Below, piece after piece: positions 16,282-38,497 of a stretch of 64,000 nt of DNA (its first letter is position 1; every line of letters begins with the position of its first letter). The notes under the pieces were generated by a model. That model was not told the origin of the DNA and searched no databases. It worked only from the letters and a program-made list of their open reading frames with translations. The position numbers and the translations under genes are program-made. The DNA lies in the sequence record NC_048792.1; one strand, 5' to 3'.

Positions 16282-17244
16282 ATGCAAACTCGTAATAGCG
16301 TCTCTATCTATGGTTGTGGCGGTGCCGGTATCGACCTGGTAAACCGTCTGCTCGATCAAGACCTCAGTGGTCTGGCTTATGTCAACGCTGCCTTCGTAGA
16401 CAGCAGCAAATCCAACTTCAACGGCCGCTACGATCCTAAGACGTGTTACGTCCTGGAAGGCGTAGATGGCTCCGGTAAAGAGCGTTCGATCAACTACCCT
16501 CTGATCGCTCGTGCAGTAGACGATGTTCTGCTGTCACACAAACCATCCGACCTGAACATCCTGGTCTTCTCTGCATCCGGCGGTACTGGTTCAGTATTCT
16601 CACTGAAAATCGCCGAAGCGCTGTGGGAACAAAACAAAGCCGTTCTGCTGTTCGTCGTCGGTTCGACCGAAAGCGGTAAAACCACCGGTAACGTTCTGGA
16701 TACTCTGTATTCGATCGATACCATGGCTCGGAAGAAAAACGTCTCTGCGGTTGTCTACTACGACACCAATGGCAGCAACGTCCGTAACTCTGAAGTCGAC
16801 ATCAACATGCTGACCGGTATGCGTTGGATCCTGGATCTCTACGCAGGTACTCACCACGGCCTTGATAGCGCCGATGTTCTCAACTGGGCTCGTCCTACTA
16901 GCGGCGCCAAAGTAACACCTCAGCTCTGCCTGCTGGACATCACCGAAGATCGCAACGAAGCGATCGAAATCGAAGCACCAATCTCTGTTGCTGAACTGCA
17001 CGGTGACGACTATCGTGGTGAAGGTACTATCGCCGCTGACTACAGCGCGTATGGTAACCGTCGCGAAAGTGGTAAAGGTTCTCTGTACTTCAGCATCTAC
17101 ACCCATGGCCTGGGTTCGCTGATGGATGAACTGAAAACCATCAAGGACGATTACGAGCGTCGTAAGGCCTCTCGTGAGAAACTGACTTCTTCTGTAATGA
17201 AGAACTCTGGGCCGTCCGAAGACGACGGGATGTTTTTCTCCTAA
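16282..17244 (+). CDS. phuZ: PhuZ tubulin-like spindle protein
   Basis: GCGGAG, tubulin signature SASGGTGS, and acidic C-terminal tail EDDGMFFS. Confidence 0.93.
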   Translation: MQTRNSVSIYGCGGAGIDLVNRLLDQDLSGLAYVNAAFVDSSKSNFNGRYDPKTCYVLEGVDGSGKERSINYPLIARAVDDVLLSHKPSDLNILVFSASGGTGSVFSLKIAEALWEQNKAVLLFVVGSTESGKTTGNVLDTLYSIDTMARKKNVSAVVYYDTNGSNVRNSEVDINMLTGMRWILDLYAGTHHGLDSADVLNWARPTSGAKVTPQLCLLDITEDRNEAIEIEAPISVAELHGDDYRGEGTIAADYSAYGNRRESGKGSLYFSIYTHGLGSLMDELKTIKDDYERRKASREKLTSSVMKNSGPSEDDGMFFS

Positions 17245-17518
17245 TAGTATGTAGAAAACATTCTTCGTGTTTCAAAGTAGTTCAATCTTGATCTTCGGCA
17301 GTTAACGCTGCGCTTGGATTCGGATAAAACTCTGGGCGGGGTTAACCTCCCGCTCCGTTTAACAATTTGGAAAAGGTCTGAAGAAGACCAACCCCTCGCG
17401 GATTAAGTTCCGTACATTAGCCGACTAAATCGTATTCGGCTCTAAACAAGATATACCGCACTATAGATCTGCAAACAAACGTTGAACGATTGAACGCTGT
17501 AGCGTCTTCCTTCCGTAG

Positions 17519-17560
17519 CTATCTCCCTCGGCGACCTTAACCGGTCGTCGGGGAGAGATA
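17519..17560 (+). terminator. Long hairpin terminator
   Basis: atctccctcggcgacc-ttaacc-ggtcgtcggggagagat. Confidence 0.7.
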
Positions 17561-17598
17561 TGCTATTATGACTTTTTTGCTCGAAATGATTTCAGAAC

Positions 17599-17614
17599 TA
17601 TATTACTACAATGA
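17599..17614 (+). promoter_or_regulatory. Early promoter TATATTAC-N5-TGA for the orphan-ORF array
   Basis: gaaatgatttcagaacTATATTACtacaaTGA. Confidence 0.75.
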
Positions 17615-17731
17615 TAGGAGTTTTATACTCTAGAACTTACTGTATCAAATTGTACGTAGCTTTCACTTATAATGAGGGTAGTTGCTGCACATTTGGTATT
17701 AAATTGAATCTGGTGGATTACAGGGACAATT

Positions 17732-18124
17732 ATGATTGGGCAAACTACAGTAGTAGGTAACGTACCATTGCTGTTACGTTCTATCACGAAACCTTATCCT
17801 TACTTAGTCCATGAGAACACGATCTTCCAATTGATGTTATTCACTTGGTGGAGCGTAGGTGACCTCGGCTGGGCAGAGCAGTTGTATACCTGGGTAATCA
17901 GGACGGGTAAGGATGAGCTTCCTCGAGCAGCCATGCTACTACCGGGAAGGAACCCGGTCGATTACGATAGGATGTTATTCGAGATATTTGATAACGTCTG
18001 TAATCACGAAGACATCCTCACTGACTACATGATCTCGAGCTTCGACCATTATCGACATCTGTACATTGAGGAAATCTATTTTAGGAAAAGGGAATTCACA
18101 CTGAAACTAGCGGTGAGAAAATGA
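17732..18124 (+). CDS. Array protein 1 (hypothetical)
   Basis: 130 aa, first of ten tightly coupled ORFs. Confidence 0.65.
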   Translation: MIGQTTVVGNVPLLLRSITKPYPYLVHENTIFQLMLFTWWSVGDLGWAEQLYTWVIRTGKDELPRAAMLLPGRNPVDYDRMLFEIFDNVCNHEDILTDYMISSFDHYRHLYIEEIYFRKREFTLKLAVRK

Positions 18125-18486
18125 TTATACTTTACGACATCAGCACGATGATCAGTATAGCGAGAAAGATAGATCCAGAACTGAGCCAAGGAGACTTGCT
18201 TGAAATATTCATATTTTGCATTACGAAAGACAATGATCTAAATTTGGTACATCCGACTTATATTGACGGATCCAACAGAAGAGTAGCTGAGACAGTCAGG
18301 AGATTATGGCGGTTCATGCCAGGTTATAATTTCTTGGATATAGAGGATGTTCAACTCGCTCCATTCGGTCGTGTAGCAATACACGTAGATGAAGAGGAGT
18401 TCTACGACAGAAACCCTAATGCAATCCCTAGGAGTAAGTCATGGAGAGAATATATCGTCTCGACTACCCAATGTCTGTTCAAGTAA
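18121..18486 (+). CDS. Array protein 2 (hypothetical)
   Basis: 121 aa, ATGA overlap. Confidence 0.65.
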   Translation: MIILYDISTMISIARKIDPELSQGDLLEIFIFCITKDNDLNLVHPTYIDGSNRRVAETVRRLWRFMPGYNFLDIEDVQLAPFGRVAIHVDEEEFYDRNPNAIPRSKSWREYIVSTTQCLFK

Positions 18487-18857
18487 TCCTGAATAAACTG
18501 GATGGTTTGGAAGCTAAATACCGATTCCTTTATTCGTTAGTGAACACCGCTATATGGACAGGGATCTACGAAGGGGAATCGGATAAAACCCTTTCCTTCA
18601 ACGAACATTATTACAACGATCACATCGAGTACGTATACGACGACGAAGAGATGTCTGAAGAAACTCTACAGGCTAGGATGAAGGAGTTGGATTTCTTATC
18701 TGACTTATTCGCCCGGCCTGAGGGAATCAATCTCTTCGAGAACAGCCTGGCTACAATGGGTCGTTCTTTGTCAGATATCGTAGACGGTTTAGCCGATCCA
18801 GTTCTGGCTGTAGAAACCGCCTTGATTAGTCACTACGATGTTTCAGTTATGGATTAG
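18441..18857 (+). CDS. Array protein 3 (hypothetical)
   Basis: 138 aa, AGGAG RBS. Confidence 0.65.
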   Translation: MERIYRLDYPMSVQVILNKLDGLEAKYRFLYSLVNTAIWTGIYEGESDKTLSFNEHYYNDHIEYVYDDEEMSEETLQARMKELDFLSDLFARPEGINLFENSLATMGRSLSDIVDGLADPVLAVETALISHYDVSVMD

Positions 18858-18866
18858 AGGATTGCA

Positions 18867-19346
18867 ATGGGCAAGTTAGTTGTCGTAGATAGTTATTCGT
18901 TAACCGGGTTCTTGCTCAGTACAATACGACAGTTTATCCGTCGGTATCCTGAGTACCGTGAACGAATCGATCCGAACATTTCGATAAACAATTTGCAAGA
19001 AACTACCGAGCGCATCATCTGGAATATCATTCAGAAGGACAAGCGTTTCGGTTCCCCGGAGTATTGGGATGAGGTTCAGGAAATCGGGAAGTGGTTCAAG
19101 GGCTACGATCCCGAAGGCGTCTATATAGACGACCGTGGTGAAGAGCAAAATAGCGATGAGATGTCAGGTGAATTCTTCCGTGAAGTTATCGACATGTACG
19201 AAGTTCGTATCCGGTCAGTATTGGGATCGATCGGCGTAGATCTCAGCTGGGAATATTTGGAGTACGAGAAATCTACACCAACCGCTCTTCTATTACGGAG
19301 TCACGGTGACTATCGTATTTACGATTATCACAAACGTAATGGGTGA
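18867..19346 (+). CDS. Array protein 4 (hypothetical)
   Basis: 159 aa, GAGGA RBS. Confidence 0.7.
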   Translation: MGKLVVVDSYSLTGFLLSTIRQFIRRYPEYRERIDPNISINNLQETTERIIWNIIQKDKRFGSPEYWDEVQEIGKWFKGYDPEGVYIDDRGEEQNSDEMSGEFFREVIDMYEVRIRSVLGSIGVDLSWEYLEYEKSTPTALLLRSHGDYRIYDYHKRNG

Positions 19347-19349
19347 GTT

Positions 19350-19697
19350 ATGAGGACATGGTTGATTCCAGTAGAAACGCTACGGGCAAGATACACGAGG
19401 TTACTCGATAATGTAGATCGGGATGCGAAGAACTCAGTTAACGTTGAGGTGCATCTGAAATACTTGTTGGCTAACCTCATGGAACCCGATCTCTTCTCCT
19501 ACCGTGTTGATGAGATAGCGAACGACTTGAGTATGTTTGGTTTCGACCATATTGTCTTTGATTGTTTGGTCTTGGAGGTTAGTGATTTCTTCAAGAAACA
19601 AATAGTCTATCACACCGGATTACCCCCGCATCTTTTCGAAGGAAACTGGCACCTTGACTTCCCAACAAGAACGTTATCGGTCAGTGCATATTGTTGA
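19350..19697 (+). CDS. Array protein 5 (hypothetical)
   Basis: 115 aa, starts 3 nt after the previous stop. Confidence 0.65.
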   Translation: MRTWLIPVETLRARYTRLLDNVDRDAKNSVNVEVHLKYLLANLMEPDLFSYRVDEIANDLSMFGFDHIVFDCLVLEVSDFFKKQIVYHTGLPPHLFEGNWHLDFPTRTLSVSAYC

Positions 19698-20157
19698 TAT
19701 CTCGAACCTGCTCAGTCTATTTAAAGTCATGGTGAGTCCGTATGGGCTCTCCGTGGCTGATTGTGTTCGGGTAGCGTTCCTTTATGCCATGACCTATTCA
19801 GTAAACAGCGACGGTTCCTCTGTCTTTGACATGAGGTTACGTTATCGTATCGTTAATGAGATGGAGGTACTGGTCGAGAAATCGTTGATCAAACATCCAC
19901 TTAATAACGAAGAGGAGTATGAATTACATCGGACTAATATCTACCTGATGATTCAGAAAATGTCTCGTAATCTAGGGCCGCAATCCTCAGGGTACTTCGG
20001 CGTTATTGATTCTATAGAGGATATAATGTTCGATTTTGATCTCACCTTAGGAACGCTCTATGTTAGATTTAAGAAGCCCGCCTGGGAGGCATTCAAAGAG
20101 AATAGTTCTATATCTCGACTACAAAGAGGAAATCCACGATCTCTATCTCAGCCTTAG
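19684..20157 (+). CDS. Array protein 6 (hypothetical)
   Basis: GTG at 19684 is the probable start; the ORF track uses 19654. Confidence 0.6.
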   Translation: MHIVDISNLLSLFKVMVSPYGLSVADCVRVAFLYAMTYSVNSDGSSVFDMRLRYRIVNEMEVLVEKSLIKHPLNNEEEYELHRTNIYLMIQKMSRNLGPQSSGYFGVIDSIEDIMFDFDLTLGTLYVRFKKPAWEAFKENSSISRLQRGNPRSLSQP

Positions 20158-20467
20158 TAAAGACTGGGGGATCATTGGAGCACCTCGATTGTTGATCGAA
20201 GGGGCTATCAACTCTATTACGGCCTCTACGCCTCCTAAGGTAATACTTAAGGAACTCTCCGAAATCATCATGTTAGTTCGTAATCCGTTCTTCCAGAAAG
20301 AGAATTGGGACATGAACAACTGGATGTCTGACGCACTCGTTTTTTACGGCATGTTTCAAAAGTTCTATGCGCATGTTCTGATTGCCAGGAACTTAACCGG
20401 GGAGTACTCCGTATCATCTATCGACTTCAGTCAATCTTCAATAAGGTTGATGTTGGAGAAACCATGA
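20060..20467 (+). CDS. Array protein 7 (hypothetical)
   Basis: 135 aa, start uncertain. Confidence 0.55.
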   Translation: MLDLRSPPGRHSKRIVLYLDYKEEIHDLYLSLSKDWGIIGAPRLLIEGAINSITASTPPKVILKELSEIIMLVRNPFFQKENWDMNNWMSDALVFYGMFQKFYAHVLIARNLTGEYSVSSIDFSQSSIRLMLEKP

Positions 20468-20904
20468 TTAACCGTAACTTCACTTCCACGGCACTATTCG
20501 AGATTCGTGGATGGAATGCAAGTGTTCTAGATGCATTCGTAAAGAGGCACGCTCCGGATCTAACTGGCCCGGAGTTACTTAAGTATGCTGCTCAGTTGTC
20601 TTTGGATTACTACATCCATCCCAATGGAGAAGCGTTTGATAATCTCCAGGATAATCTTGAAGAACAGTTTGGTTATAACGAGTTGACGGAAGATAGCCCG
20701 GATTACGTTTATGAGCAAATTGAACGTGAAGTGCAAGTATATGTGGAAATCGTATCTGACTTCGCAAGGTATCTTGATAAAGAAATCGAACGCATCGCCA
20801 ACCGTATCGACATCCCGTTGAGCCGAGTCAGTATTGATCGTGCTTTCGTACGCGGGCACACATTCGGTTTACAGTTAGTCGATTATGACCGGGAGGTTTG
20901 GTGA
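20464..20904 (+). CDS. Array protein 8 (hypothetical)
   Basis: 146 aa, ATGA overlap, GGAG RBS. Confidence 0.7.
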   Translation: MINRNFTSTALFEIRGWNASVLDAFVKRHAPDLTGPELLKYAAQLSLDYYIHPNGEAFDNLQDNLEEQFGYNELTEDSPDYVYEQIEREVQVYVEIVSDFARYLDKEIERIANRIDIPLSRVSIDRAFVRGHTFGLQLVDYDREVW

Positions 20905-21356
20905 GCACCGTAGCTAAAGTAATTGTCTTTGAAGCACTTGAGTATTTAAGGCTGTTGGAAAACCTGTGTTCTGTAGTAGAAGCCTCTGACGAAATGGTAT
21001 ATGTCAGCCGTGAAGGTATTACCCATTGTATTCTGGATGATATCATGAGCGGCGGCACATTCGAGGGTTCTATGCGGGGCTATGTGTTTGCCGATAGTAA
21101 ATGTAAAATGGATGTTGCTCTTGAAATAATCGAAGAGCAGCGTGAGTTATTAAGGAATGAATTGACTCAGGTAATGATGCGTCAGTGCATGGGTGTAATC
21201 AAAGATGCCTCTTTCATTGATAACTTCACCATACTCGGGTTAACTAAATCCATTGCGATGAGATACCTGACAAATGATTCTGAAATGTTACCACAGCAGC
21301 GTATATCTCCCCGTCGTAATTGGGGAATACGTAGACGCGATAACCGGGCGTATTAA
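20901..21356 (+). CDS. Array protein 9 (hypothetical)
   Basis: GTGA overlap, GGGAGG RBS. Confidence 0.65.
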   Translation: MSTVAKVIVFEALEYLRLLENLCSVVEASDEMVYVSREGITHCILDDIMSGGTFEGSMRGYVFADSKCKMDVALEIIEEQRELLRNELTQVMMRQCMGVIKDASFIDNFTILGLTKSIAMRYLTNDSEMLPQQRISPRRNWGIRRRDNRAY

Positions 21357-21654
21357 GAAAGAGGCTAGCGAGTCTGGGGAAGATCTGGAGATCGACCCCG
21401 TCTTCGTCATGGAAGAAGCCGTTAAAGAGATTGAATGGTGTTTCATTGAACTGTTGTCTCTCGAGGAAGGAGCGCCGCCTACTTTCGATTGGTTAATTAA
21501 CTCGAGTTTACCTGCAATCAACTTCTATCGTTCTTTGATGGATACCGATGTCTTCACCCATCTACGCAATGAGGAGTTCGACTTCGTAAGTCTGGATGTT
21601 ATGAATTCTTGCGAAATCTTAGTAACTCTGAAATGGAGAAGTAAAAATGGCTGA
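21274..21654 (+). CDS. Array protein 10 (hypothetical)
   Basis: 126 aa, overlaps the previous ORF. Confidence 0.6.
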   Translation: MILKCYHSSVYLPVVIGEYVDAITGRIKKEASESGEDLEIDPVFVMEEAVKEIEWCFIELLSLEEGAPPTFDWLINSSLPAINFYRSLMDTDVFTHLRNEEFDFVSLDVMNSCEILVTLKWRSKNG

Positions 21655-22072
21655 AGCAGGTAACAAGATCCTGGGTAAGTTTAACCTGGGTGATCGGGTT
21701 ACGTTCCAGATTTACCCGGTGACACTTTACGGTGACATTTTCCGTAACTGCGTCCCTACTGACCTTATCTCGTTCAAGTCAACGCCTCGCTTTAATGTCG
21801 ATGCTGCGGCTGAACACGCTAAGGTCTACAACTTACTTCCACCTGGCCAAGCGCCAAATGACCCTGCGGGTTATAAGTGGTTAGTAGTTACTCTGGAGAA
21901 CGGCGATGAGCGCGTAATCGGGTTACCTTGGATTAAGGTTGATACAATCCAGGTAATCCAGGTAGTTAACACCTACGTGACTATCCCGAACACTGCCCCA
22001 GAAGATCAAGAGAAGATTCGACTGGCACTCTCTGCCGCAGGTTTCAACGACGTCGAAATCAATCAACGATAA
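21647..22072 (+). CDS. Conserved phiKZ-like hypothetical protein
   Basis: 141 aa, GGAG RBS, followed by a terminator. Lies immediately upstream of the DNA polymerase. Confidence 0.7.
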   Translation: MAEAGNKILGKFNLGDRVTFQIYPVTLYGDIFRNCVPTDLISFKSTPRFNVDAAAEHAKVYNLLPPGQAPNDPAGYKWLVVTLENGDERVIGLPWIKVDTIQVIQVVNTYVTIPNTAPEDQEKIRLALSAAGFNDVEINQR

Positions 22073-22188
22073 CATACTCCTCCCTCTGCCTAATGGCAGA
22101 GGGAGGGCTATTTATTCTCTTTCTTTTTTCTTTTACGTCATGGGCTGATGGTATAGATGAAAGTTTAAGATTAGAAAAAGGGATTAAC

Positions 22189-34095: not shown

Positions 34096-35613
34096 ATGGA
34101 AATCTATTTTGATCCGGAAATCGACGAGAAACAAAAGCTCGTTTTGATGGGACATCCCGGAGAAGAGCCGTTGGTCTGGGACATGCGTTATTACAAGAAG
34201 GTAAACGCGGAAATGTTTCGGGACATCAACGATTTCTGGCGGTGGCGTCCAGAAGAAGAGCAGGCTGCGATCTTCCAGGCGTTCAGGAATATCCGCGATG
34301 TGCTCGGTGTAGTATTCGATCCAAACGTCCTGTTCAGTATCATCAACAAGGAAGTCATTAAGATCGCGAAGTATCATCCGATCGACCTGGTTGATCACTG
34401 GGTAAGAACGCGTTCTCAGATTCGTTTTCCAGATAACCTGAAAGACGAAATGGATGAGCGTGACCGACCTGAGCAAACGTATCTGCGTGACGACTATCGT
34501 CAGCTGACGTCTCTGTCGGTAATCCTGAAGTTCATGTTGCCGATCTGGTCTGAGTATACCATGCTCAAACTGGGGTTGCGTGAGAACCAGCAGGAAGTAG
34601 TATCCATGGCGTTGCTGCAACGTAGTGGTATTGAAGAGAGTGCTCCATTCCAGCGGTTCCGCGTATTCGTGGATTATATCGCATCGGATAACGATCCGGG
34701 CATGAGAAACATTCTCGAAGGTATCGGGACGTTGGACATGCCGGAGTGGATCTTCAGTCTGATGATGGTAGAACGACTGGCAGCTGCGGTAGTGTCTCAC
34801 AACGACGATGCGAACAAAGAGCAAACAGTTAACCTGATCTCTACGCTCTGGGCACAAACTCGGGCTAAACTGAGCCCTGACCAGAACCGTAAGAAAGGAG
34901 ATGTTCGTCCTAAGACGTTTACGTCGGCGAACGGTAGCGAAGAAGACAACTCGTCTACAGCGGAAAGTTATAAGCCCAAGGAACGTATCAGTGATGGTAC
35001 TCGAATTGAGTTCGACTATTCTGCAGCAGATGCGGCGTTGATGGGTCGTCGGTTGATGAACGATATCGATCTGGATCTGTTGAAACGACTGGTTCGTCGT
35101 AACTCGCTCCGTAAGTATTTCAACCCGACCGAAGAGCAAGTTAAGTTAACGGCACTGACGTTAGCGAAAATTAACCCGACTCGTGCAATGCCTCACACCG
35201 ATCGTACCGGTGCGATTAACATGTTGTCGGTAGCTCAGACCTATCTGCATCAGAAAGGGTTCTCTACTCTGGCTGATCTGTTAGGTGCAAGTCGCGGTGA
35301 GCCGTGTAATACGATCTCTGGTAGCGAGCAGATCAAAGATCACCACAAAACTATACTGGCAACCATCTATCCATATCGTCGCCAAGTAAAAGCGGGTACT
35401 GGCTCTAAGACGGTATTGAAAGATCCGGGCACAATTGCCATTGAAACATTAACAAGTAAATTCGCAGGCTATTATTGGTATCGTGATACCGATGACGTCA
35501 TTGCGGAAAGCTCCAAGATGGTTATTCGGGAAGGCGGTATGGTTATCCCTAGCGATATCCGACTGATCCTGGCTGACTTCATCATTGCATTAAACGGCCC
35601 AACTGGCCTGTAA
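34096..35613 (+). CDS. Non-virion RNAP promoter-specificity subunit (phiKZ gp68-like)
   Basis: 505 aa helical protein at the expected syntenic position, with its own early promoter. Confidence 0.7.
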   Translation: MEIYFDPEIDEKQKLVLMGHPGEEPLVWDMRYYKKVNAEMFRDINDFWRWRPEEEQAAIFQAFRNIRDVLGVVFDPNVLFSIINKEVIKIAKYHPIDLVDHWVRTRSQIRFPDNLKDEMDERDRPEQTYLRDDYRQLTSLSVILKFMLPIWSEYTMLKLGLRENQQEVVSMALLQRSGIEESAPFQRFRVFVDYIASDNDPGMRNILEGIGTLDMPEWIFSLMMVERLAAAVVSHNDDANKEQTVNLISTLWAQTRAKLSPDQNRKKGDVRPKTFTSANGSEEDNSSTAESYKPKERISDGTRIEFDYSAADAALMGRRLMNDIDLDLLKRLVRRNSLRKYFNPTEEQVKLTALTLAKINPTRAMPHTDRTGAINMLSVAQTYLHQKGFSTLADLLGASRGEPCNTISGSEQIKDHHKTILATIYPYRRQVKAGTGSKTVLKDPGTIAIETLTSKFAGYYWYRDTDDVIAESSKMVIREGGMVIPSDIRLILADFIIALNGPTGL

Positions 35614-35645
35614 AATAAATCGACTAAGAAAAGGAAAGACAATAA

Positions 35646-37139
35646 ATGAAACCTCAAGTTATCGACGCAATCTTCTTCGAATCTTCTAACTACGATGATC
35701 AGTTCTCTCGTTCTTTCGATACTCACTTCGACGGAGATGTATCGAATGACCTGTTGCGTAACACCAACAACGGTCGTAACTTGTCACCGACTGCATTGTC
35801 CCGTTCTGTGGGTTCTGCGATCACGATGCAATCTCGTCACCGTGGCGAAATCGTAATCCCAGGCGGCTGGGGCGAAAAACGTCTCAGTTTCATCATCACT
35901 GTACTGATCGACGATTATAATGGTCGTAGTCGTCGTCAGGTATTGACTGGCTATACTGACTATAACGGCGTGTCTCGTGTAAGTGGTTCTCTGGATGATG
36001 AGATGTTGCTGTATGTCAACAACTCCACCACTATCGCAGATACCGTGTTCAGCACCGGTCGTGGTAATACTCGTCGTTCTCGTATTGAGAGCAACGATTA
36101 CATCATCCGACCAAACGCGCTGCGTAACGACCGTACTCGTCGTCTGGGCTTTGACGAACCTGAACGTCTGCTTCGTCCAAACGATATCTTCAATAACCGT
36201 TCTATTGCAGAACAAACTCGCTTCCTGGGCGGTAGTGACGAAATCATCGATACTCGTGGCGATCTCGGTAACGAAATCAAACTGGGTCGTCGTACTGATA
36301 ACAATGCGTCCAACTATCTGTCTCGCGTTCTTCGTGCAGGGATCATGGCTGAAACTAACACTCAGCCGGAGTTCAATGTCGAATCTCGTTTTGCGGCAGA
36401 AGAGCTGACTCCAGCAGAACATGCAGCAGCGGCAACTATGCCGAACGATATCGGTTCAAACACACTGTTCATGGAATTCCTGGCCAGCTGTGATTTCGGC
36501 GTAAGTGGTTCCATCACTCTGCGTGAGTTTGCAGACTGCACCGATTGGGATGAGCGTGCAACGCGCTTCATCGATGCCGGCGAAGTGGGTAAACGTGGCT
36601 ATACTGGTTACGAACGTGGTCGTGGTAGCGACTGGAAAGGCTCTGACCGTAAGACCATCGCAGCATCTATCATCGCGCAATCTGTTCCGGCGTTGATGAT
36701 GCAACACTTCATCTCCGATGCTATCATTAAGATCACTAATGATACATTGACTGGTGAAATGAAAGCGCTGGTAGAAGGCCCTCGTGCAATGATCCCAGGT
36801 ATGGACGTAACTCCGTATCTGACTCCGCTGGAAGACCTGCTGGTTCTGCAAGTCGGCGAAGTGGTATCGCACAACAACCAAATGTTGATCGATGTTCAGA
36901 TCGACTGTTCTGTCATCACCGATATCAAAATCACCATCAGCATTGAAGGTGATGAGGACGAAGAGTTCGTAGCTCCGTGCTTCTGTGATGGTTTGACTTC
37001 TCCGATGAAAACTCCTGACTACGATCAGGCAGCTAAGATCGGTAACGATCTGAGTGCAATCATCGACGATGTCGTAGACCAAATGCGTGCTGAAACTGAT
37101 GAGCCAACTCGCGACTACTTCGACCGCGACGGTTATTAA
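35646..37139 (+). CDS. picA: Probable PicA/Imp1 nuclear protein-import factor (phiKZ gp69-like)
   Basis: 497 aa directly after the gp68-like gene. Assignment is by synteny from memory. Confidence 0.6.
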   Translation: MKPQVIDAIFFESSNYDDQFSRSFDTHFDGDVSNDLLRNTNNGRNLSPTALSRSVGSAITMQSRHRGEIVIPGGWGEKRLSFIITVLIDDYNGRSRRQVLTGYTDYNGVSRVSGSLDDEMLLYVNNSTTIADTVFSTGRGNTRRSRIESNDYIIRPNALRNDRTRRLGFDEPERLLRPNDIFNNRSIAEQTRFLGGSDEIIDTRGDLGNEIKLGRRTDNNASNYLSRVLRAGIMAETNTQPEFNVESRFAAEELTPAEHAAAATMPNDIGSNTLFMEFLASCDFGVSGSITLREFADCTDWDERATRFIDAGEVGKRGYTGYERGRGSDWKGSDRKTIAASIIAQSVPALMMQHFISDAIIKITNDTLTGEMKALVEGPRAMIPGMDVTPYLTPLEDLLVLQVGEVVSHNNQMLIDVQIDCSVITDIKITISIEGDEDEEFVAPCFCDGLTSPMKTPDYDQAAKIGNDLSAIIDDVVDQMRAETDEPTRDYFDRDGY

Positions 37140-37171
37140 TCCAACCCAATTTTAAAAGAGAGTAAAGTATA

Positions 37172-38497
37172 ATGAGCGCAGAGAACAAAAAGAAACTGAC
37201 TACGATCTATAAAGAGATCATGATCGCATTAGGTTTCGAAGTTGATTCCAAGATGCACGTACTACTGAACGAGGCCGGGGTGAAAACCCCGTTCACGATC
37301 AAAGGTAAGCAACTGACCATCCCGACCGATGAGTGGTTGAAGAATCCGGACTACGATAACCAGATCCCGTTCCATCCTCTGTCTGAGAACGTACGTCGTA
37401 AGAAATCCGAAGTCCAGGAACGTCTGGCGCTGGCGGTTTCTAATCGGGTATATCGCGTAACCTGCACTCTGCTGAACTTCATCTTCACGCTGGCGCTGGA
37501 TACTGACAAACACCCGCAGTTGACTCCGGAACAACGTGAGTATCTGCGCGACGTGCCGGACGTGACCAAGAAGACGCTGACTGCGGTGCAAAAACTGATC
37601 CAGGAGAAAGTAGACTTCAAAGGTCAGTATGCCCTGGTCAACATGTTCGTGAAACGTAGCGGCCTGTGGAAGGGTGAGGAATATCCTCGTGTCTGTACGA
37701 CCACCTTCCCGATCATGGATGAAGAACATTCTCCGGAAAAGAAAATCTTCGACGTACCGTTCCTGGTTCGTGATCGCAGTACTTTCTTCAAGGTGATGCG
37801 TCGGATCTTCCCGAACATCGATACTTCCATGGACGACTATTCTTACGGTAGCCGTTCTCAGGTAGCGCCAAACTTCCACAGTTTGATGATGGCGTTCTCT
37901 CTGCTGGCCAATGACCTGAACAAGGTCACCAAAGTATTCTGCGAAGACTTCGCGGAGCTGGAAGGTTGTATCATCCAGACCAACTGGGTGAAAAACATGG
38001 CCGACCTGAACGACTACAAAAACGATATCCCGCCACTGGACGGTAATATCGGTGAAGCGAATGAAGATGAACTCGCTGAGATGAAGTCTCGTCAGGAAGA
38101 GAAAGTTAAACGTGAAGAGCGTCGTACTCTGCGTCGTGAAGTGTCTGCAGGTCGCCAGAGTATCCTGCGTCCTCGTGACGAAGGTAACCGCTTCGTGCGT
38201 CAGGAAGAAAGTCGTGAAGATGAAAGAACTGTTAGCTGGCGTGGTCGCGCTGGTCGGGACGACGATCGCGGATATGGTCGTGAAGATCGTTATCGCAGCC
38301 GTCGTGATGACCGCTACGACGATCGTGATCGTGGCCGGGATAGTCGCTATCGTGATGAACGTGATGACCGCGGATTCGGTCGTCGAGACGACCGCTATAG
38401 CCGTGAAGACCGGTTCAGTCGCGATGATCGCCGAGATACTCGCGGCGGTAATGACGATTCCTGGTTCGACAACGTAAGTACTCGTCGCCGTTGGTAA
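37172..38497 (+). CDS. Conserved protein (phiKZ gp70 position) with an Arg/Asp/Glu-rich low-complexity C-terminus
   Basis: 441 aa. The last ~120 aa are RD/RE/GR repeats. Confidence 0.65.
   Translation: MSAENKKKLTTIYKEIMIALGFEVDSKMHVLLNEAGVKTPFTIKGKQLTIPTDEWLKNPDYDNQIPFHPLSENVRRKKSEVQERLALAVSNRVYRVTCTLLNFIFTLALDTDKHPQLTPEQREYLRDVPDVTKKTLTAVQKLIQEKVDFKGQYALVNMFVKRSGLWKGEEYPRVCTTTFPIMDEEHSPEKKIFDVPFLVRDRSTFFKVMRRIFPNIDTSMDDYSYGSRSQVAPNFHSLMMAFSLLANDLNKVTKVFCEDFAELEGCIIQTNWVKNMADLNDYKNDIPPLDGNIGEANEDELAEMKSRQEEKVKREERRTLRREVSAGRQSILRPRDEGNRFVRQEESREDERTVSWRGRAGRDDDRGYGREDRYRSRRDDRYDDRDRGRDSRYRDERDDRGFGRRDDRYSREDRFSRDDRRDTRGGNDDSWFDNVSTRRRW

Follow-up and report, generated by a model that had tools for sequence, protein, structure and literature searches.

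We hold with moderate confidence that ten small open reading frames (ORFs) of Serratia phage Moabite make up one operon, that they largely share a single private, duplicated fold, and that most likely they serve the phage nucleus as cargo-specific adaptors or as accessory factors. Moabite is a nucleus-forming jumbo phage, a chimallivirus. The DNA stretch analysed here (the window, 64,000 nucleotides (nt) in length) corresponds to bases 1-64000 of its genome (MK994515, 100% identity), and the ten ORFs, called o1 to o10 (CPT_Moabite_027 to 036), occupy positions 17732-21654 on the plus strand.

The ORFs all lie on one strand and encode proteins of 115-167 amino acids (aa). An initial annotation of the window had described ten same-strand ORFs of 115-160 aa; all of them are present and overlap or abut one another, and only the size range required correction. 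Their junctions vary from a 98-nt overlap at one extreme to a 9-nt gap at the other. An eleventh gene of the same operon, o11, overlaps o10, and the operon spans from a promoter-like motif upstream of o1 to a single terminator 3′ of o11 (Table 1). Upstream of the operon are found, in order, the gene for the tubulin PhuZ (16282-17244), a terminator and the promoter-like motif.

We collected related loci via the DNA polymerase, and comparison of these loci showed a conserved slot. In it, a gp42-like head gene (followed in some lineages by PhuZ) precedes one to three small genes; next come a gp43-like gene with five to nine small genes after it, and then a gp49-like gene and the DNA polymerase. 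This order is kept in FBKp24, EaH1, SPLA10, Eowyn, PCH45, RTH11, phiKZ, PhiPA3, PS119XW, Psa21, 201phi2-1, Viktualia, Desertfox, Noxifer and Goslar, as well as in 80 IMG/VR loci. All ten Moabite genes fall inside this co-directional slot, with o1-o3 upstream of the gp43-like o4 and o5-o10 downstream of it. The likeness of o4 to the phiKZ gp43 family consists of membership by profile (hhsearch 97% over 141 columns; an iterated hidden Markov model (HMM) reached 69 loci, including phiKZ gp43) and of the same position in the array, although o4, the sole member among the ten, has 159 aa as against 357 aa in phiKZ. The product of o11 is a clear homologue of phiKZ gp49 (phmmer 2e-17), and its orthologue in L095, a 58.7-kb wastewater contig from Logan (SRR22103703) that was found via o9, matches PF20287 (SH3DP). 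While o11 is in one operon with the ten, the gp49 family is a different fold family and evolves slowly. Since o4 belongs to the gp43 family and o11 is the gp49 homologue, o5-o10 occupy the place of phiKZ gp44-gp48.

Structural comparison pointed to a fold that recurs along this array. AlphaFold2 models of o2, which is upstream of o4, and o8, which is downstream, had a predicted local distance difference test (pLDDT) of 80 and 88 and a predicted template modelling (TM) score (pTM) of 0.73 and 0.83, respectively. The order of elements is alike in the two models: an N-terminal strand comes first, then three helices (with an additional long helix in o8) and finally a C-terminal hairpin. The initial annotation had quoted peptides for a first strand and a closing hairpin in most of the ten proteins; all of these were found at the ends to which they had been assigned, and in both of the folded proteins the AlphaFold2 strands lie exactly there. 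In a search of BFVD (~350,000 entries), nearly all matches of the o8 model were small chimallivirus proteins that are uncharacterised, one phage often contributing several. Every match that we mapped by exact-sequence look-up (11/11) is a gene of the slot array: EaH1 gp028 and gp029, Eowyn gp079 and gp082, Desertfox gp213, Mortimer 222, Noxifer gp039 and gp041, Psa21 gp040, 201phi2-1 gp80 and PhiPA3 gp044. The proteins from Eowyn, Desertfox, Mortimer, Noxifer and Psa21 stand at array positions other than that of o8. EaH1 gp028, the orthologue of o8, matched with a TM score of 0.79, and EaH1 gp029 (W8CZK8), the orthologue of o6, with TM scores of 0.52/0.54 and a probability of 1.0; across positions, o8 reached TM scores of 0.52-0.61 with EaH1 gp029, A0A7D3UCU4 and Eowyn gp082. 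Apart from o2 itself and the EaH1 orthologue, the o2 model had a few weak matches to array proteins, with cross-position TM scores of at most 0.49. No match to the o8 model was obtained in the PDB, the AFDB clusters or the ESM Atlas, and ESM Atlas searches by features or by shape returned noise-level neighbours only.

Profile comparison connected a part of the array to families in other phages. All slot ORFs from 87 loci (821 proteins) were clustered and compared all against all with hhsearch, along with reversed decoys. At a probability of at least 70 and at least 40 columns, we observed 101 real edges and no decoy edges. One component holds 261 of the 821 interval proteins, from array positions 0-7, and contains the gp43 family (with o4), the family at ‘position 1 after gp43’ (with o5; hhsearch 84%) and a tandem-paralog superfamily. 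This superfamily, which is unnamed and is defined here from the 87 loci, has a consensus of a strand like ‘IILDT’ followed by helices and a C-terminal hairpin. Plain tandem paralogs occur in the slot of other chimalliviruses with up to four copies in a row (phmmer). The Moabite array is like the superfamily in slot and size and is linked to it by the profiles of o4 and o5; unlike other phages with two to four recognisable copies, however, Moabite has none that are alike by sequence. Among the eight remaining ORFs, the links reach only positional orthologues, those of o2, o6 and o8 being in FBKp24 and EaH1, while o1, o3 and o7 showed no family link in profile comparisons. A regular expression built from the hairpins of the ten was weakly enriched in the arrays of other phages (18% vs 8% of clusters) and matched 15% of shuffled array proteins; we rejected it as too weak for a family signature.

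The proposal that all ten belong to one diverged paralog family thus stands in part. A single fold holds for o4 and o5 by profile, for o8 by structure, and for o6 by structure through its EaH1 orthologue. The topology of the o2 model makes it likely that o2 belongs to the same fold; it may extend to o1, o7, o9 and o10, and it is doubtful for o3. The part that did not stand is sequence kinship, as similarity among the ten does not rise above that of decoys.

The relatives compared for evolutionary rate were Totoro and L095. All of o1-o10 are full length in both, with amino-acid identities of 40-77% and a ratio of non-synonymous to synonymous substitution rates (dN/dS) of 0.1-0.36 where dS is unsaturated. 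Full-length conservation together with low dN/dS indicates that o1-o10 are genes and not chance ORFs. Relative to PhuZ, o11 and the polymerase, their dN is higher by a factor of 2-6 and, judged by these substitution rates, the ten are fast-evolving yet under purifying selection. As examples, o1 is 65% identical to its Totoro counterpart and 52% to that of L095 (dN/dS 0.17), o3 is 45-46% identical to both, and o5 is kept at 73-75% identity and is annotated in Totoro.

Position in the slot offers an indication of function. In phiKZ, orf47 and orf48 encode Imp2 and Imp4, each of which serves the import of specific cargo into the phage nucleus; Imp2 itself enters by way of Imp1/PicA. Imp2 and Imp4 have been reported as conserved in Pseudomonas phages only, and our tblastn search with phiKZ gp47 likewise found Pseudomonas phages only. 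The initial annotation had placed some phiKZ nuclear-import mutants in small genes of this area; orf47 and orf48 do indeed lie in the slot homologous to the Moabite array, which is bounded by the gp43-like gene on one side and by the gp49-like SH3 gene with the DNA polymerase on the other. As the array sits in the slot that holds Imp2 and Imp4, its proteins may be factors of the same kind. Imp4 (127 aa) and the conserved core of Imp2 (~140 aa) are near the Moabite ORFs in size, although Imp2 homologues reach 309 aa; like the Moabite genes, each forms its own positional family with narrow sequence conservation, and the C-terminal end of the Imp4 family is a hairpin-like motif. Proteins of the Imp2 and Imp4 families were present among the top 50 BFVD matches of the o8 model, with TM scores of 0.21-0.31. 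Noxifer gp041 (Imp2 family, hhsearch 93.6%) was the fifth-best match (E 7e-3, probability 0.72). We regard these predicted structural bridges as a weak lead, and not as evidence of homology. The main text of two phiKZ proteomics and transposon studies does not mention gp43-gp48. Going by position, import adaptation is the best candidate function for the array.

The window also carries, at 34096-38497, homologues of phiKZ gp68, gp69 (PicA/Imp1; 35646-37139, 497 aa) and gp70 in the phiKZ order.

A number of observations weigh against a family-wide fold with an import function. Among the ten proteins, blastp all against all gave nothing below E 0.8, and hhalign of the ten against each other (first with profiles of 2-8 sequences, later with profiles of three) was equal to reversed decoys (Mann-Whitney p 0.23). 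Eight of the ten, o1, o2, o3 and o6-o10, remained outside the profile network with profiles of 2-8 sequences, and after profile merging the cross-family links were at 50-77% and mainly covered the first ~45 residues. The structural comparison draws on models of two of the ten proteins; many of the BFVD matches of o8 lie at TM scores of 0.3-0.45, and those common to o2 and o8 are few and all weak. The bridges to known import factors are weak as well: Noxifer gp041 has a TM score of 0.31 with o8, 201phi2-1 gp80 (Imp4 family) 0.28/0.30, and PhiPA3 gp044 (Imp2) 0.21 at E 0.88. Neither the Imp2 family (six-member profile) nor the Imp4 family had a profile link to any Moabite ORF. A four-chain complex prediction returned 0.51, 0.00 and 0.05 for o8 against the PicA homologue, o7 and o9, respectively, and gave no answer. 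Finally, linkage to gp49 and the DNA polymerase suits a role in replication equally well.

The ten ORFs could also be a collection of unrelated small early proteins, in which the strand-helices-hairpin plan is generic, true paralogy is limited to neighbours such as o6 and o8, and no function is common to the family. We consider this a substantial minority possibility. It is in keeping with the lack of above-decoy similarity among the ten, with the failure of o1, o3, o7, o9 and o10 to link to anything, with a hairpin expression barely commoner than in shuffled sequences, and with the difference between the BFVD matches of o2 and o8. Set against it are the plain tandem paralogs of other chimalliviruses, a profile network with zero decoy edges, and the retrieval by the o8 model of array proteins from several positions in many phages, with nothing in the PDB, AFDB or ESM Atlas; in addition, both folded proteins agreed with the blind prediction made in the initial annotation.

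Two further explanations would keep the array together and assign it another task. The proteins may be accessory factors of the replisome whose targets, the divergent DNA polymerase and the gp49-like SH3 protein, are encoded immediately 3′ of the array and co-expressed with it. The linkage to these two genes is invariant across the family, o11 overlaps o10 in the same operon, and phiKZ gp49 has been described as an SH3 protein that interacts with the DNA polymerase, with a strong phenotype in plaque formation upon knock-down (PMC12571901). We nevertheless find this improbable, as the array genes have 2-6 times the dN of o11, PhuZ and the polymerase, genus-restricted families and variable copy number are both unusual for core replication factors, and the sole slot members of known function, Imp2 and Imp4, both act in import. 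Early cytoplasmic proteins for host takeover or counter-defence, which an arms race with hosts including Serratia would have diversified, would account for the early-type promoter motif, the fast evolution with lineage-specific expansion, and the finding of no homologues outside chimalliviruses. Judged by slot and gene order, which are kept across phages of Pseudomonas, Erwinia, Klebsiella, Xanthomonas and Escherichia, and by a dN/dS well below 1, such a role appears less probable still.

According to the reading that we prefer, the ten ORFs would be the Moabitevirus version of an array that is present in the same slot of the diverse chimalliviruses sampled. Its fold would be a small alpha/beta domain, so far known only from chimalliviruses, with an N-terminal strand, three to four helices and a C-terminal hairpin; hairpin and first strand would apparently form one small sheet. 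The array would have arisen by tandem duplication and diverged past sequence recognition with its gene order, that is positional orthology, retained. Its proteins, expressed from a putative early-type promoter, may be cargo-specific adaptors of the phage nucleus or accessory factors to it. Each paralog might serve a separate client, which would account for the rapid, lineage-specific turnover. A bolder form of this proposal, that every nucleus-forming phage has a polymerase-adjacent array of one private fold which licenses clients via PicA/Imp1, with Imp2 and Imp4 as its diverged local members, seems to us rather unlikely.

The positions of the array genes and of the flanking signals are given in Table 1.

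Table 1. Genes and regulatory signals of the Moabite operon (positions in the window)
Feature	Position	Strand	Remarks
Promoter-like motif	17585-17620	+	GATTTCA, then TATATTAC (17599-17606), then ATGATAG
o1 (CPT_Moabite_027, 130 aa)	17732-18124	+	First of the genes that precede the gp43-like gene; an orphan with an orthologue in the FBKp24 group
o2 (028, 121 aa)	18121-18486	+	AlphaFold2: strand 2-6, three helices, hairpin 73-80/84-89, disordered tail
o3 (029, 138 aa)	18441-18857	+	Acidic; fastest evolving of the ten; no hairpin claimed by the initial annotation
o4 (030, 159 aa)	18867-19346	+	phiKZ gp43 family, as a short member with the N-terminal domain alone; conserved throughout Chimalliviridae
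o5 (115 aa)	19350-19697	+	Family at ‘position 1 after gp43’; missing from the Moabite GenBank record
o6 (032, 167 aa, TTG start)	19654-20157	+	EaH1 gp029 orthologue by phmmer and iterated HMM
o7 (033, 135 aa)	20060-20467	+	Orphan, genus-restricted; 98-nt overlap with the o6 tail
o8 (034, 146 aa)	20464-20904	+	AlphaFold2: strand 5-12, four helices, hairpin 122-130/133-144; reference fold of the array
o9 (035, 151 aa)	20901-21356	+	Orphan, genus-restricted
o10 (036, 126 aa)	21274-21654	+	Directly upstream of the gp49-like gene; occupies the phiKZ Imp4 (gp48) position
o11 (037, 141 aa)	21647-22072	+	phiKZ gp49 homologue (SH3, DNA-polymerase-associated); last gene of the operon, outside the ten
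Terminator-like hairpin	22078-22107	+	13-pair stem, T-rich tail; terminator also annotated in GenBank; closes the operon

None of o1-o10 matched Pfam or PHROGs. For o9, just three clusters were found among 5.8 billion proteins, and when 1.84 billion representatives were scanned in full with an HMMER profile, its own cluster alone was retrieved and nothing outside the genus. The ESM Atlas neighbours of o10 were uninformative. The start of these proteins with strand, Asp and helix had raised the possibility of a PIN-like fold, which was rejected as it had no match in Pfam or among solved structures. GenBank gives the product of o4 as ‘thymidylate kinase-like protein’, which corresponds to an HHpred probability of 61 only; we rejected a thymidylate kinase or P-loop assignment, which was without Pfam support and without a structural match to solved members. 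In place of o5, the Moabite GenBank record calls a 59-aa ORF on the minus strand, CPT_Moabite_031 (19434-19613), and this ORF is not open in L095. An unannotated ORF between gp320 and gp321 of FBKp24 (L003:10606-11022) is the orthologue of o2 (hhsearch 92%). L095 itself represents a third, undescribed Moabite-like lineage with the same operon architecture, in which o9 is 64% and PicA 72% identical, and several further Logan contigs have PicA homologues at 39-52% identity.

The TATATTAC motif lies 126 nt upstream of o1 in Moabite, and the promoter-like motif is kept in Totoro and L095, 132 nt upstream of o1. Six copies of TATATTAC occur in the window, at 2154, 17599, 34050, 39239, 49195 and 61024, all of them on the plus strand and with a wider context in common, namely GATTTCA upstream and (A/T)TGATAG downstream. 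Jumbo phages with RNA polymerases of their own are reported to carry an AT-rich type of motif, ~10 nt long, ahead of early operons (PMC7598289), and the putative promoter motif of the operon fits this type. The six copies are probably the early-type promoters of the phage.

The non-coding region between phuZ and the operon promoter (17245-17580, plus strand) is more conserved than the adjacent genes, with a mean column identity of 87% across the three phages, in which synonymous sites are saturated. The structure predicted for it comprises 86 pairs, of which 8 show compensatory double changes, and closes with the terminator hairpin at 17516-17569. A search of Rfam with this region gave no match. 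The region is a candidate for a structured 3′ untranslated region or a small RNA. Four wastewater runs labelled as RNA-seq (X1-X4) contained scattered contigs of 150-270 nt that are identical to the window at 17500-22100. These are probably DNA carry-over; they indicate that the phage is present in wastewater and do not provide evidence for transcription of the operon.

The array may bear on how the phage nucleus, with its wall of protein, selects cargo. Genetically defined cargo-specific factors have come from phiKZ only, and reports confine these to Pseudomonas phages. If the slot of Imp2 and Imp4 is a pan-chimallivirus array made largely of one private fold, with clear positional orthologues, it would provide a list of candidate adaptors for every nucleus-forming phage, with 6-10 genes per genome. 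If this is true, the array would also be a natural series for the evolution of new client specificities on one scaffold. Even with another function, the models suggest that the array represents a fold without a relative in the PDB, AFDB or ESM Atlas that has expanded within one virus family.

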